From Dicyema japonicum (lineage: Eukaryota; Animalia; Dicyemida), in NCBI GenBank assembly GCA_011109175.1, contig RDEW01000021.1, forward strand, positions 830,049 through 878,841: 48,793 nt of DNA. Direction: 5' to 3'. Shown piece by piece: positions 3,111-43,699 of the stretch. The position numbers and the translations under genes are program-made. The notes below the pieces were generated by a model. The model saw only the letters and a program-made list of their open reading frames with translations. It did not search any database and was not told the origin of the DNA. The stretch's first letter is position 1. Every line of letters begins with the position of its first letter.

Positions 3111-4049
3111 AAGGATAATTAAAGTCAAAAATAATTAAATTAGAGAGCTTGAGTGGTCAGGTTGTTTCCTCTGACGATAGCTATTGAAAAACGCTATCAC
3201 TTAATGAAGTAATTAAAATAATACATTAAATAAAATTTTTGAGGTATGTTAATTTTTCAAGGATAATTAAAGTCAAAAATAATTAAATTAGAGAGCTTGA
3301 ATGGTCAGGTTGTTTCCTCTGACGATAGCTATTGAAAAACGCTAGCGAAGCCATCCAGTCTCACGTAGATCTTTGGTGACCCTTTGGATCATTCAGCCGA
3401 TCCGACGGACTAGTCTAAGAAAATATTACACCTAAGCATGCCTAAATCTAATCTCAACCCTAATCAAGACCTAATCTCAATTCTAATCAATACGTCAATC
3501 AAATATCAACATTGAGCCAAAAAAGATCAAATTTTTTTCCGTAAGTGGGCAGTCATAAATCGTTTTATTCTGCTTCGATGGAGATCTATGGGCACTGTCT
3601 GCTCTTTTATGTCTAATGCTTGAAAATTATTGAGTTAAATTTACTCACGAAAGATGAAAGTTCAAAATAGGGGACGTGAAAAAAGCTGGAGAACCGGCAG
3701 TTGATACAATCATTCAGTGACCTGATAAGTCCTAAGCTGAAGTGGGAATTAATCAATCTTCTCGTGTATATGGACAACGGACATGGGTAACATCGGAAAA
3801 CCCAAGTTCTAAACAAAGAAAACGCCAATTAGCTAAATCTCTACATCCAAATTCTGTGTATCCCTCGTACTATTAAAATGAGGTAATTGTCTCCGGCGTG
3901 TAAGAGGTCAAGTCCCTAACATAGAAGTAGACAAAAATCAATAATTTAAAATCAACTATGAGATCAGGTAACCCAGAAGCACCAAGCAATGAAATTTATG
4001 CAAAAATATCAGAATTGATAACAAAATCAAAAATATCAAAAAGTTGAAG

Positions 4050-33238: not shown

Positions 33239-33720
33239 TTTTAAGCACTCCCGGGAAATCAAAAATTAATTAGATTAATTAAGTTCCCCTTGTGCCACGT
33301 CCAGTATCCTCCCACACATCCTCTTCCATGTTCCCCTGTTCCGGGCCATTGCTCGTAGTGAGTCAAGATCTTCACCATTTCGTAGAGTTTTGTTTATTCG
33401 GATTAGGTCATCATTTAGTACTGAAGGCAACGTCACTCTAGGCCTGCCACGGAATGATCCCTTCAGTTGTGCGAAATAGTTATCCATTGCAATGTTTGGT
33501 GGAGTCAACATATCCATTCGTAAGATGTGACCAAAAAGTCTCCACCTAGCCTTGAGAATCTCCTCTGATAATGGCCACATCTTTTGTACAGGGAAATGTA
33601 TTCTCAAGATGTTTCTTAGTTGATTTCTATGAAATTGATCCAGATTGTCCATTTCCCGTTTCGTAATCGCCCATGTCCCACAGTTGTATGTCAGGACTGG
33701 AACCACGAATGTTTTATATG
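33239..33720 (-). mobile_element. 5'-truncated RTE LINE with 9-bp target-site duplication
   Basis: VPVLTYNCGTWAIT..DQFHRNQLR..FRGRPRVTL; 3' end CCCGGGAGTGCTT; ATGATAATT at 33230-33238 and 33721-33729. Confidence 0.93.
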
Positions 33721-37209: not shown

Positions 37210-39623
37210 ATGAGTGAAACTGACTTTAAATATGGAAATTCTGACTCATTTTTCAACGAACTTTCAGGTTAAATCACAAATCTATAAATAGAATTTTTGT
37301 CTGCACATCACACAAAGGAACTTCAGGGGATGACGTCCAATTATCGCATAGTCGGAAGCTCACTCATTTTGGAGTGGAATCAATCGTCCATCGCTAATCG
37401 TCGCCACATTCTCCTCACTCTTGCCGATCGACTAGAGACCACTTCCAATGACCTCCACTACGAAGCCCTCCTCGTCCTAGTACTCATTTCTAACGGGCTC
37501 ATTGACAATTCGGCTGAGTCTATCGATTCTCTGTTTACGGTCATACAGCAGAACTGTCTCCTCATGATTGAAACGGGACTATTTCTTTCAATCTGGGAGT
37601 ACTGTCTCGTGCAAATCAGGTCATTTGGTTACTAATCTCCTAGAATGCTGAAGTATGTCACACATGTCTTAGAAAATAATAAAAGAACACAGGAAAATTT
37701 AAAGTTTTTTTTCTTCTTATTTTAGTTTAGGCCTCCTTATTTTACATACTCTTCTAGAATATTCTAGAACAATCCGAAAAGACTCTAATCAGCGGGAAAA
37801 GATCGCCAAGGACGTAATTGTGGACTGTCTTGGTATTGGTCAAACAAAGCTAGTTCAGCGGGGGAAGAAAATGTGACGATTCTTCTGTGGAATATTCTCA
37901 CAGAGTTCTTTGCGGGCGATCTCCCACTCATCCCTGTAGGAAAGGTCACTATTCTGCTAGCAAAATCGACCTCAGTAAAGTATCGTTTAACGACAGTTAG
38001 TCCTGGGGGAGATCTCTGACTACCATGATCGACTTAATGAGACTCGGACGGCGGTTGGACTGTCCATGTGTGCTGAGGACATCCACGAGATTGCTGAATC
38101 TATTAGACAGAACGATCTGAAGGATAATAAAGGTGGGTTATCCGACGAAAACGAGGAAACCGAGGAGAAAAGCTTCAACGTTCAGAGACATCGACTAACG
38201 AATTTGGGGATGAATACAGACAAGGTTGTTTGGTCTCCCAAAATATCGTAATTTCTCAGTTATTGTAGCCTTGAGAAATATAAGGAGCACGTGTTTCAGA
38301 CAAAGACCAAGTACTTTGGTTTGGCGGGCTATTCCGATAATTTCAATCTTTCCCGCCTTCCTTGTGGCCTTAAGCAAAGCCTGATGACTTGTCGACAGTA
38401 CGTTTACACTCCCCTCTCTGACCCACAACGACAGAGGTTCAGTGACTATGTTTCACGCCCTTTCACTTCCCCTTTCCCTGTAGACGACTCTACCCACGCC
38501 TGGAAACTGTACAGGAGCATTTATCCCTTTTCCGATCACATGGTGGTCTTTGTTCTGAGTTTAGGCCTCCCTTGTAAAGCTGGCATTCCTAGTCTACTCA
38601 GGTAATGAAGGGGACGCAAGTTCCCCATTCGAACTGATCAACGACGTCTGCGAATATGAAAATTTTGCCCACAAGTAGTGTTTTACGTGATTCTGATAGT
38701 ATAAACGCCGAAAAAGTCCGTTTTCGTGAAGTGATTGGAAAGCATTTGTCTTATCTATTATTGACTTTGCTGAAGTATTTTAAGCTGTCTCACGTCTATA
38801 AGGCATTTTTATGACTGACTCCCAGTTTGAGACCATTTGTGGTGAACTGATGCAAAACAACATTCTCTCAGCTATCTTCAGGTTCCTCAACAGGGAACAG
38901 AACATGACCTGCTCTGAATATGGGAGTTATTTTCCTCTGACTGACTCCCAGTTTGAGACCATTTGTGGTGAACTGATGCAAAACAACATTCTCTCAGCTA
39001 TCTTCAGGTTCCTCAACAGGGAACAGAACATGACCTGCTCTGAATATGGGAGTTATTTTCCTCTTTGCTGTGCTCAGTGGTGGTCCCCTCCTGTTGGGAA
39101 GAAGAATTTTTCTTGGAAGTTGTGTTTCACTGCTGTGAACCTCACTAGAGTGGTGATTAAACTGGTGAAACACAAACCTTGGAGAATCTCGGTATTCTGG
39201 CATTCTTATGTGCAGGGAGTGGTCACTGCCAAGTCGTTTGTGATGCAAATGAGGATGTTGAAGCTGGAGATCCCGATACTGCAGCTGTACTCCCTTAAAT
39301 TGCTGAAGATTCAATGGAAGTACCTGACGAGGCACTGGCGGAAGACCAACATTCGAATAATGTCTTTGATTTCTCTAAAATTGCGGGTTCTCATAAATGA
39401 CGACTGGAATAGCACCTCCCTATTGGACAATAACTCCCAAGAGGAGGTCATTGAGCAAGATACTGGGATTTTCAATAAGATTATGTGTAAGGGGAAGTAC
39501 CCCCATAAAATCAGGGAGTCTCTTAATGTCAATGTGGATGAGATCTTTAGTGGGGACATTAACGAATGGCTTAAATGTGAGGTTTTTGATAGAAGAATTG
39601 ACTGGAATCGTCTTTTGATATAA
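37210..39623 (+). CDS. STRIP1: Striatin-interacting protein (STRIP1/2, FAM40; N1221 + DUF3402)
   Basis: DFKYGNSDSFFNELSE, LLKYFKLSHVYK/FE, FSWKLCFTAVNLTRV, LQLYSLKLLKIQWKYLTRHWRKTN, NDDW, EWLKCEVFDRRIDWNRLL. About nine micro-introns, one GC-AG; a 126-bp exact duplication inside. Confidence 0.93.
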
Positions 39624-39649: not shown

Positions 39650-41560
39650 GGGACACTTAGTTTTTATGTTTTGATATGGGGGGAATGAAGTTTTAGCATA
39701 ATTGGGGACGATCCTGGTAGTTTATTTTCAGGGACAGTTGGAATGACTGATGGTTGGAAGGTTTTGGGGAACTCCAGTGTACAAGATGTCTGCATTGCTT
39801 CGTGGGGGATGCTATTCCTTATTTTTATGGTGATTTGGAAAATCTGAGGTTTTTAATCAGGGAAAGGTCGGCCTTACAGGGAATCTCTTGTCCAATAACC
39901 TGGAAAGGGTATCAACCCGGTTTCGTTGACATGCAATAAGCTCGTGTCTAACCGCTAAGTTCGAGCTTTTTTGTCAAGTCCTGTTTTTGAAGATAGTCAC
40001 CGAGGAGTTTGATGTTGTGAAGACATTTAAAGTCATCCTGTTGATAAAAGATTAGATTTTGAACTTATCTAAACAATCTCTTGATGTAATATAGGAGGAG
40101 AGTTAGCGAGTAGTGTGAAGTCACTGAGGAGAGAAAACAGAAGACTGATCCTTGCTGAACTCTGTTGAGGAGATAGGAAAAACAAGACATATTAGAGTAT
40201 AAACATGTGAACAAATACTTCCAAAAAGATGGTGGATAATTAAATTTTGTCGGAAAAAACTTTACGAAGAGGAGAGAAAACAGAAGACTGATCCTTGCTG
40301 AACTCTGTTGAGGAGATAAAAAAAACAAGACATATTAGAGTATAAACATGTGAACAAATACTTCCAAAAAGATGGTGGATAATTAAATTTTGTCGGAAAA
40401 AACTTTACGAAAAATGTCTTGGTCGGGTTAATGAAAGTCAGCAAGAATCAAGGACAATAAGGCTGTCATTTTCATTTTAGAACAGTTCTTCAAAAAGGTC
40501 AGATAAGAAGGGTGGGTGGTATTTTTTATCATGAGTTATATAAGATACATCTCTCAATGACGTCTACAACATTATCATAGTTAACAATTATCTGTGTGAA
40601 GCTTAGCAAATGATCCTCTTTGATACAGTCCTGCCACTGGGTGGCTCCTGAGACAGGTGGATCACTAATTGTACTAAAGCAAAACATAGAGAACTCCCGA
40701 TCGAACGCAAGACTATTGTTACACGTACGATATCATAACATTCAGGGAATGGTTAGACTTGGTAGACATAACTTTTTCAGTGAAAAAGTGTCTTTAATGT
40801 TAACAAGATGGAAAACTTAGTAATATCTTCCGTAATTATAACCTTCCTTCAAGCAGGTTGATCAAGGTTAATGGAGAGAGGGAGACTTTTATTTAATGAG
40901 AGTTAAATTTGATGAATATTATCAGTTAATAAATCCGTCTAATCTGCTTCGATGATGTCATAACCCCAGCTTATTTTTTTGTATTAGCCCAATCGACTAT
41001 GCAGTTCCATGATGGCACGAAAAAAGATCATTTTCTCTTTTCCCACTCGAATGAAGGGGTTTTCACTGCTGCAAGGAATAGACGTCTTTTACCTTTCATC
41101 CTGGTGGACTTGGATGAGATTAGAAAGACACTGTTTATGTGACAGTGGAAGCTGGATACACTTAATTAGTTGTTAACTTATTTCTTTGTGTATCCGGGGT
41201 TAATAATCTGCTTCGATAGTATCATTTTATTAGAATTGCTGTTCTTACCTTTCAGTTTAATCTCACAGCATTCAAATACTAAGCCTAACACCGAATAAAG
41301 ACATTTGTCACTACAGTCAAGCAGACTGAAACTTCCCTTACCTCTCTGCCGATCATTTAGGGCTACTTTCTTGTAACATCAGCATAACACCACAAACTCG
41401 AAGACGACGTCGCGGACCTATCGGTTGTCTCTCCTATCGATATTCCTACCTTAATTAAATCCGGCTCATTCAGTGCGATAAAAAATCTGTGTTCAATAGC
41501 CACGTGATATGCCACAATCTTAGTATGAAAAAACCCCTACTGTTCAATCTAAACAAAATA
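39650..41560 (-). CDS. Probable multi-exon hypothetical gene
   Basis: Coding-like composition, open stretches (e.g. IFQITIKIRNSIPHEAMQTSCTLEFPK) and many short GT..AG segments; not assembled. Confidence 0.35.
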
Positions 41561-41604
41561 TCTCCACAATAAATTATTAAAGTGACAATTATTGACAGAC
41601 TACA

Positions 41605-42549
41605 TCATTTAGTAGTCTTCTTGGCAATAGCTCTTTCAACATCCCTCAGTTGCTGTTCCAGTCTCCCCCGTTTCCCATCCACCAATTCACTGTCCCATCT
41701 ACTATCAATACATCCTTCACCGAGTTTGCTTGATATCCGGAGATTTCTTCCGACCTCTCTTATGTCCGCCAGAGGACAAACTACGAGAAGACGATCTCCT
41801 TCGAATGCGCTGTCTGGATCTCCTACATTCATCTCCCTTGCAGATAATAGAAGACACAGTTCCACGTGGAGGGGTTCTGACCTCGTCAGTAAGCGAACCG
41901 CTCGATGACGAGTACGAGGGACTTGAGGAGGCTCTAGGAATGAATAAATAAATCACGTGGTGGAGGCCGAATCCACGTTTTCTATATCCCTCAGTTTAAG
42001 GTGTAGTTGTTTCTCAACGAGGTCGTCCTCCGCGTTCCGCCTTACTTCAGCTTCCGCCATGGCCTATCAATTAACTGACCAGCTACTATTTTGGCTTGGT
42101 AGAGAGCCTTTCCCCACAATGATTCGTCCTTTAACTTTGAGGGATCATACGTAATCTTTGTGTGCAATGCTGAGAATGATGACTTTGCTTACCATATTTC
42201 TTCGGGGAACGTCCCTGATTTTGGACATTTTCGATTGGAATAATCTCTCCCTTTATCTCCCCCTCATCAGAAGAGTCCTATATGATAGGATATAATAATA
42301 CTGAGTTATTTGTTGATTTGGTGACATTTACTTGTGAAACTTGTATTTCTCCTTCCTACATTTTCGATTGGAATAATCTCTCCCTTTATCTCCCCCTCAT
42401 CAGAAGAGTCCTATATGATAGGATATAATAATACTGAGTTATTTGTTGATTTGGTGACATTTACTTGTGAAACTTGTATTTCTCCTTCCTTTAATATTAC
42501 TAACTTATTATACGTCATAAGAGCAATCAGACAGATCATCACGAAGCAT
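41605..42549 (-). CDS. ZC3H18: Miniature ZC3H18-like protein lacking the CCCH finger
   Basis: Two DEGEI motifs, KYALHTKITYDP, ESLWGKALYQAKIAMAEAEVRRNAEDDLVEK, an RS-rich stretch and C-terminal RGRLEQQLRDVERAIAKK. Six GT-AG introns; requires collapsing a 133-bp duplication. Confidence 0.72.
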
Positions 42550-43699
42550 ACCTCGCAAAGATTTAAAATGCGTTTATTTATTTAAAAAATTTTAAAGTTC
42601 ATGAAATTTTATGAAATTATAATTAAAAAGTTCACAATCTGATAAGAATTTAACTGCCACGTCAGTCAACGTTAGTTGGTAGGCTACCCTTCCAAAAGAC
42701 GTAGAGGGGTGAAGAAGTTCAAACAGTTCTTTAGTGTTTAACTTGCACCGGGCGCCTTGAATTGTTAGCGTGCGTCATGTAGTTCACCATTTATGCTGGC
42801 GCCAGATATAATCCTAAATTACATACAAAAAGGACCATTAGTCAACAACCACCCATAGAATTCCCCCCCCAAACGGTACTTCTCTCAAGTCAAAGGATGT
42901 GAAGACTGTTGAGAGAGGTTGGGATCACCTAAATTAGGGCGGAAGTTGTCCTATTCCAAAGATAAAATTGTCCTAAAATTTCAAAAGCAATTTCTAAAAA
43001 CTAATGCATATTAACAATAACACCTAAAAAAGATTTATTTTGCCAAAAATGCTCTAAGATAGTAAAATCAACCAACACTACTACACCGATCTTAATGGAT
43101 AAAGACGTCAGANATCACCTAAATTAGGGTGGAAGTTGTCCTATTTCAAAGATAAAATTGTCCTAAAATTTCAAAAGCAATTTCTAAAAACTAATGCATA
43201 TTAACAATAACACCTAAAAAAGATATATTTTGCCAAAAATGCTCTAAGATAGTAAAATCAACCAACACTACTACACCGATCTTAATGGATAAAGACGTCA
43301 GACTGAATGCTAAAAGTAGAGACCATTCAACTTTTTCTTCCTTAAAATAACAAAGAAAACTAGAAATCTTTTTAGTTAAAGCATTTTAAATGCCGATATT
43401 TCATTTCACAAATTGGGGAATAGGTATATTAAAAGCTACAGTTAATTTTCTGTTTTTCTTCACTTTTAATGCGTTCATTAAAATAAATAATGAATAAATT
43501 TATCAAATTGTTAAAATCAATTTAATAAAATTTTAAAGAAAAATCAAGATTCTTTATNTTTTTGTTTAATGAACGCGACTTTTCTTCACTTTTAATGCGT
43601 TCATTAAAATAAATAATGAATAATTTTATTAAATTGTTAAAATCAATTTAATAAAATTTTAAAAAAAAATCAAGATTCTTTATTTAATTTAATCATAAA

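Follow-up and report, generated by a model that had tools for sequence, protein, structure and literature searches.

The minus strand at positions 41605-42549 of the window (the whole stretch of 48,793 nucleotides of Dicyema japonicum DNA that was analysed) raises the question of whether this octopus-kidney parasite possesses a ZC3H18 that keeps its protein-interaction motifs and has lost its CCCH zinc finger. Human ZC3H18 has 953 residues, is mostly disordered and serves as the adaptor between the cap-binding complex (CBC)-ARS2 and NEXT. Knowledge of its working parts comes solely from truncation and AlphaFold-guided mutagenesis. They comprise three motifs arranged in tandem (191-DDGEIDDGEIDDDDLEEGEV), a zinc knuckle (residues 222-243) that raises the affinity for ARS2, 248-KGNYSL, which lies on the shaft of ARS2, a helix (residues 300-321) that is headed by W301 and lies on CBP80, and a Ser-rich region followed by a C-terminal coiled coil of 52 residues that is the NEXT platform.

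Exon-intron structure of the predicted gene

Direct reading of the minus strand located the motif-bearing pieces where the initial annotation had placed them and in the order that it had proposed, namely MLRDDLSDCSYD, then DSSDEGEIKGEIIPIENVQNQGRSPKKY, a 23-nt GT...AG interval, ALHTKITYDPSKLKDESLWGKALYQAKI and an RS-rich frame at 41721-41933. The product ends in ...RLEQQLRDVERAIAKKTTK at a stop codon (41605-41607) that is reached after a frame change, and the ATG at 42549 is the first in frame, an in-frame stop lying 8 codons upstream.

The splicing pattern required revision, as introns of 103 and 148 nt and a product of ~235 residues had originally been assumed. The published draft assembly of D. 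japonicum (67.5 Mb in 377 scaffolds, heterozygosity 1.24 %) has a mean intron length of 38 bp, the introns of Dicyema sp. have a median of 27 bp with two thirds below 30 bp, and the splice signals of D. japonicum are reduced to GTa...AG only. Because micro-introns are the rule in this species, it is the 103- and 148-nt introns that are odd and those of 19 and 23 nt that are normal, and the two longer intervals probably hide a 24-nt micro-exon and an exon encoding a 36-residue helix. Our revised model has seven exons separated by introns of 25, 54, 23, 23, 23 and 19 nt, and its single-copy form comprises 645 coding nt, equivalent to 214 residues (231 if a duplicated exon, discussed below, is counted).

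Exon 1 (42514-42549, on the minus strand like all features of the gene) encodes MLRDDLSDCSYD and has two differences to the other haplotype, one of them synonymous; without splicing its frame meets a TAA two codons on. It is followed by intron 1 (42489-42513; 25 nt, GTATAA...AAAG), whose size is within the species norm, and by the proposed micro-exon (42465-42488; 24 nt, EGEIQVSQ), in which the one haplotype difference is synonymous. Joining of the micro-exon to exon 1 would create a canonical ARS2-recruitment motif, D|EGEI, across the predicted junction. Intron 2 (42411-42464; 54 nt, GTAAAT...ATATAG) leads towards exon 3 (42193-42277), which encodes DSSDEGEIKGEIIPIENVQNQGRSPKKY and contains DEGEI with a partial KGEI (42242-42268), a Cys-free linker and the start of a KKY|ALH peptide that is split by intron 3 (42170-42192; 23 nt, GTAAGC...CTCAG). 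Exon 4 (42087-42169) encodes (A)LHTKITYDPSKLKDESLWGKALYQAKI, comprising the YAL peptide and a Trp (codon 42114-42116) that heads a helix-like stretch.

Intron 4 (42064-42086; 23 nt, GTAGCT...GATAG) could alternatively start at 42079 with a length of 29 or 35 nt, giving the same frame in the proposed exon 5 (41957-42063). The latter is an open frame for AMAEAEVRRNAEDDLVEKQLHLKLRDIENVDSASTT, a charged helix or coiled coil of 36 residues that would continue the Trp helix, and both of its haplotype differences are synonymous. Intron 5 (41934-41956; 23 nt, GTGATT...CCTAG) separates it from exon 6 (41721-41933), a Ser/Arg-rich tract of ~70 residues whose frame is backed by haplotype differences. A frame change is required at intron 6 (41702-41720; 19 nt, GTGAAG...GATAG), for which acceptors giving 22 or 31 nt are likewise in frame, and exon 7 (41605-41701) encodes (R)RWDSELVDGKRGRLEQQLRDVERAIAKKTTK and the stop codon, with the C-terminal helix motif at 41617-41664. 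Exon 7, like the gene as a whole, is single-copy in the genome.

We infer the use of the micro-exon and of exon 5 from these features. A path of two micro-introns through the 148-nt interval also arose in 23 % of shuffles, so that the path by itself is weak evidence and the support for exon 5 is moderate; the intron sizes, the open frame and the two synonymous differences together make it likely that exon 5 is real. Skipping of the micro-exon keeps the frame, and it could therefore be a cassette exon. As the same is true of exon 5, the junctions of the initial annotation may exist as isoforms.

Haplotype differences and tandem duplications

Evidence that the gene is real came from contigs of four public runs, all of one 2019 sample, which are DNA-like and ~98 % identical to the window. 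These contigs represent the other haplotype and, as they possibly derive from the assembly's own project, are not a fully independent source. The gene model was fixed before the comparison was made. Ten of the 13 exonic differences were synonymous and 10 of 13 fell at codon position 3, and with an expected synonymous share of 0.23-0.28 the probability of 10/13 is P = 6e-5 to 4e-4. The gene is therefore real, and these differences show it to be under purifying selection in the predicted frames. In the RS exon, exon 6, 7/8 differences were at codon position 3 and 6/8 were synonymous in the RS frame, as against 1/8 and 0/8 in the two alternative frames. One might suspect a pseudogene in decay, or open frames that came together by chance, from the facts that no homologue was found and that the public runs containing the stretch are DNA-like only. 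However, the excess of synonymous differences and their clustering at third codon positions, which only the predicted frames show, leave this reading barely credible.

The same comparison decided between two models of the 3' half of the gene. We considered a model (Model B) in which exon 4 is extended to a strong donor, AAG|GTAAGG, at 42045 and joined to a single frame from 41931 to 41605 that needs no micro-intron. This model was rejected because only 0-1/8 differences are synonymous in its frame versus 6/8 in the RS frame. In addition, apart from a skip of 133 nt, the haplotypes have no indel between them, which means that a sequencing error does not explain the frame change at 41702-41720.

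The 133-nt skip concerns a tandem duplication, 42225-42357 and 42358-42490, whose two units are 100 % identical. The upstream copy (42358-42490) contains the micro-exon, intron 2 and an extra DSSDEGEIKGEIIPIEN at 42360-42410. The contigs of all four runs skip exactly 133 nt, and hence the other haplotype has one copy, a result that leaves the copy number of the assembled haplotype unsettled. Tandem Repeats Finder identified 16 duplications of this kind in the 48.8-kb window, or about one per 3 kb, each with 1.8-2.0 copies, a period of 99-286 nt and 92-100 % identity. They start at 1684, 3051, 7064, 8530, 9556, 18690, 27626, 30006, 30782, 33721, 38812, 40126, 42225, 42924, 43454 and 45314, the one at 42225 being that compared with the contigs of the other haplotype. 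They have the look of an artefact that recurs throughout the assembly, unless the genome itself behaves in a most unusual way; if an artefact, the duplications look as though scaffolding or gap closing had placed overlapping contig or haplotype ends one after the other. Both DEGEI motifs of the initial annotation are copies of the 133-nt duplication, and because the other haplotype lacks the extra copy and the duplication is one of 16 of its kind, the extra DEGEI exon is probably an assembly artefact and should not be counted. More generally, the locus illustrates that reading an assembly from its sequence alone can be misled by tiny introns inside apparently long ones and by two-copy tandem duplications.

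Other duplicated or repeated sequences were observed in the window. A 126-nt unit is perfectly duplicated in tandem at 38812-39064, so that 42 residues (TDSQFETICGELMQNNILSAIFRFLNREQNMTCSEYGSYFPL) occur twice, in frame, within an ORF at 38811-39623; this duplication is probably an artefact of the same kind as that at 42225. A high-copy repeat (42669-43302), in which contig depth is 20- to 100-fold that of the gene, begins ~120 nt upstream of the gene's ATG; within it lie a unit of 190 nt present in two copies and, at 43113, an N. Open frames of the reverse-transcriptase type of non-LTR retrotransposons lie at 2-736 and 33275-33706, consistent with the reported genome repeat content of 49 %.

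Predicted docking motifs, the missing zinc finger and partner genes

The model contains DEGEI in exon 3, D|EGEI at the join of exon 1 and the micro-exon, and the partial KGEI, and both full motifs fit the published ARS2-recruitment consensus [ED][ED]GE[ILV]. Downstream of them are the KKY|ALH peptide, which has K, Y and L in common with human 248-KGNYSL and is too short for statistics, the Trp-bearing DESLWGKALYQAKI of exon 4, continued in the predicted model by the charged, helix-like exon 5, the ~70 residues rich in Ser and Arg (41721-41933) and a helix-like RLEQQLRDVERAIAKK that ends 4 residues from the C-terminus. The human literature agrees with the initial annotation that motifs of the EDGEI type bind ARS2 and that the Trp helix contacts the cap-binding complex, through CBP80. 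The C-terminal motif had been assigned to that complex as well; published work on human ZC3H18 assigns it to NEXT instead.

No CCCH zinc finger accompanies these elements. The 16 residues that link the EGEI motifs to KYALH include no Cys, as had been claimed, and neither a C-x6-10-C-x4-6-C-x3-H nor a CCHC pattern was found in any of the six frames from 30000 to the end of the window. In addition, the 23-nt intron 3 occupies the place of the human zinc knuckle, so there is no room for a finger there. The gene is finger-less and single-copy. The minimal form would be an artefact of the model if the assembly lacked or misplaced an exon for a finger, or if such an exon lay further upstream. The many suspicious two-copy duplications of the assembly and the closeness of the high-copy repeat to the ATG would suit such a finger, and the initial annotation had itself allowed for a CCCH exon concealed by misassembly. 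However, the contigs of the other haplotype span 41400-42800 and revealed no hidden sequence or exon, being unbroken from 41400 to ~42757-42800 save for the 133-nt skip. The motifs and the YAL peptide are parted by only the 16-residue linker, in the same exon, and the 23-nt intron, the nearest CCCH match on the contig is ~95 kb away, and the in-frame stop precedes the ATG by 8 codons. A finger that has escaped the model is thus very improbable.

The surface to which the acidic motifs would bind is conserved in D. japonicum. The ARS2 gene is intact on contig C318, with its C-terminal leg in a single open frame that aligned to human SRRT at E = 1e-22. The Dicyema protein is near-identical to the human one across LCPLSGKKFKGPEFV.KHI.NK, and its GKKFKGPEFV.KH stretch is identical. 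In human ARS2, K719, K722 and K734 lie at the motif-binding surface and their triple mutation abolishes motif-mediated binding; counterparts of all three are included in the conserved Dicyema stretch. Two further matches to the ARS2 domain were noted (G000:C120:11311-11643 and G000:C46:1111453-1111599), one of which has three internal stops and may be a pseudogene.

The tandem arrangement of the motifs is rare. The pattern [DE][DE]GEI-x(0-10)-GEI occurs at three places in the 67.5-Mb genome, two of which are the duplicate copies in this gene. The only other site (L030 ~3998-4036, or G000:C224:718697-718735 on the plus strand, NDDGEIIDAENGEIIMDEN) adjoins reverse-transcriptase-like retroelement debris, and no gene could be assigned to it. 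On the basis of its sequence, the product of the window gene is very probably an ARS2-binding nuclear protein, and it would be largely disordered or helical. The ~70 RS-rich residues and the lack of any Pfam domain match would also suit an ordinary small SR-type splicing or RNA-binding cofactor, with no docking role for its EGEI, Trp and C-terminal strings. Against this, the tandem motif occurs only here and at one other place in 67.5 Mb and the ARS2 binding surface is almost unchanged from human, making a plain SR cofactor improbable.

Genes for the other partners of ZC3H18 were also identified. As the initial annotation had suggested checking, the genome contains a ZCCHC8-like gene with a PSP domain, distinct from SF3B2, and an MTR4-like gene with an MTR4-type beta-barrel; a CBP80 gene, split by micro-introns, is present too. 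Genes with the PHAX and NCBP3 domains (PF10258 and PF10309) lie elsewhere in the genome. The NCBP3 domain was found twice with equal scores (G000:C235:452107-452229 and G000:C223:679414-679536), which reflects either a recent duplicate or an uncollapsed haplotig. No ARS2 motif was found within 1.5 kb of the PHAX, NCBP3, ZCCHC8-like and CBP80 matches. Among 24 CCCH loci that were inspected, a motif was present within 1 kb at 1/24 only (L031; G000:C346:113000-115200, plus strand), where DLEEGEIIDD precedes a tandem pair of CCCH fingers by ~120 codons. The downstream finger of the pair matches PF22623 (KIAA1064-like) at 33 bits, above the cut-off, and we conclude that L031 is a ZC3H4-like (Restrictor) gene. 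A canonical ZC3H18, with motifs directly before a single finger, was found at none of the 24 CCCH loci.

Similarity searches gave no independent support for an identity. Exon-wise searches with pieces of 27-72 residues produced no significant match to ZC3H18 or to any protein, and at such lengths they have little power. Sequences in the PDB gave no match to any of three exon pieces, even with E allowed up to 10, and a word search with the RS open frame returned nothing, Pfam searches with seven pieces returned nothing for this gene, and the ESM Atlas held no usable look-alike of exon 5 or exon 4. A phmmer search with the exon 4 piece against 1.84 billion representatives, a library that excludes D. 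japonicum's own spliced protein, returned only three spurious matches to repeat proteins, which align to the out-of-frame tail of the piece. A full-text literature search with three human ZC3H18 strings retrieved no paper, and of the human strings compared, DDGEIDDGEIDDDDLEEGEV and KGNYSL are those confirmed by the literature. A complex prediction with the C-terminal leg of Dicyema ARS2, zinc and a 32-residue motif piece that ended in four read-through residues scored 0.25, below the mark of 0.34, and speaks neither for nor against docking.

With no significant match, the ZC3H18 reading rests on the order of the motifs and on exclusion. Of the identity claimed at the outset, the part concerning motif order has stood, and the exon-wise searches failed to add a significant match; since there is also no finger, membership of ZC3H18 is not established. 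The ZC3H18 reading is favoured by the fit of the motifs, the rarity of the tandem pattern, the conserved ARS2 surface and the order of the elements, as well as by the presence of the partner genes and of separate PHAX, NCBP3 and ZC3H4-like genes elsewhere. It is weakened because short linear motifs easily converge, the finger is absent, the spacing differs, the evidence for the micro-exon and exon 5 is moderate and no match is significant. On balance we lean, if only slightly, towards a gene whose mode of action is closest to that of ZC3H18 and which probably descends from it in reduced form, without the CCCH knuckle and most of the spacer. The fuller statement, that a Dicyema ZC3H18 has been cut to ~214 residues of docking motifs and helices with the CCCH finger and ~700 spacer residues gone, we regard as evenly poised.

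The main rival to descent from ZC3H18 is an ARS2 client peculiar to this lineage, in the form of a small, RS-rich protein of the nucleus that acquired its EGEI motifs, and perhaps its Trp helix, by convergence. Such a protein would still dock on ARS2, and its downstream partner need not be NEXT. The failure of every exon-wise search to detect significant similarity is consistent with convergence, as are the spacing and N-terminal position of the motifs, which are unlike those of human ZC3H18, and the fact that the ARS2 motif occurs in many unrelated human RNA factors, including FLASH, THRAP3, PRPF4B, RTF1 and CPSF2. However, convergence would have to account for five elements in the ZC3H18 order, among them a Y-[AS]-L that closely follows the motifs and a helix right at the C-terminal end, and the CCCH loci inspected yielded no further candidate for ZC3H18. 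We therefore consider a convergent client rather unlikely, though deserving of serious attention.

If the gene is a reduced ZC3H18, its ancestor would have lost the CCCH knuckle and most of the spacer sequence. In its product the acidic motifs would bind ARS2 at the zinc-finger surface of its C-terminal leg and the Trp helix would bind CBP80, and the C-terminal helix would recruit the ZCCHC8-MTR4 (NEXT) module, through which capped short transcripts would be passed to the exosome. We infer all of these binding steps, as well as the descent from ZC3H18, from motifs and their order.

Comparison with known systems

A natural ZC3H18 of about a quarter of the usual size, with contact elements only, would lend evolutionary support to the human contact map. 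It would represent a natural deletion experiment on the parts that are sufficient to link CBC-ARS2 to the exosome, and would suggest that the cap complex can be joined to the exosome, at the core of the pathway, without a zinc knuckle or long spacers. In addition, it would provide structural biologists with a small construct. Proteins of this type escape annotation by domains in genomes that are reduced and evolve fast.

Several other proteins that bind ARS2 share individual features with the window gene. Tandem motifs of the EDGEI type are found in the first ~35 residues of ZFC3H1 and of Schizosaccharomyces pombe Red1, the scaffolds of PAXT and MTREC, where they bind the ARS2 zinc-finger domain. 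However, these scaffolds are of very large size, and ZFC3H1 makes direct contact with MTR4. They also have a CCCH finger and HAT/TPR repeats, which are absent from the Dicyema gene. PHAX and NCBP3, the productive effectors of CBC-ARS2, resemble it in having an ARS2-recruitment motif alongside a Trp helix, which in their case binds CBP80, whereas their folded RNA-binding domains (PF10258 and PF10309) are absent from the window gene. ZC3H4 and the Dicyema locus L031 have an upstream ARS2-recruitment motif as well, but L031 has two tandem CCCH fingers and the window gene none.

Human ZC3H18 is the protein to which the gene bears the closest comparison, and the differences between them are considerable. 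The human protein has 953 residues, and that of Dicyema ~214, with far shorter spacers. The motifs are at the extreme N-terminus in Dicyema versus residue 191 in human, and the distance from YAL to the Trp is ~17 residues compared to ~50 from 248-KGNYSL to W301. The CCCH knuckle that lies behind the motifs in human is absent from the Dicyema gene, and because the human knuckle adds ARS2 affinity, its absence is a real functional difference. Sequence similarity between the two was below detection in the exon-wise searches. In contrast, both possess tandem acidic motifs and a Ser/Arg-rich region, and the K..Y[SA]L peptide, the Trp that heads a helix-like stretch and the helix-like C-terminus of the Dicyema protein are candidate counterparts of the human elements; the human helix behind W301 may align across the Dicyema exon 4/5 junction without a gap, and the order of the elements is the same in both.
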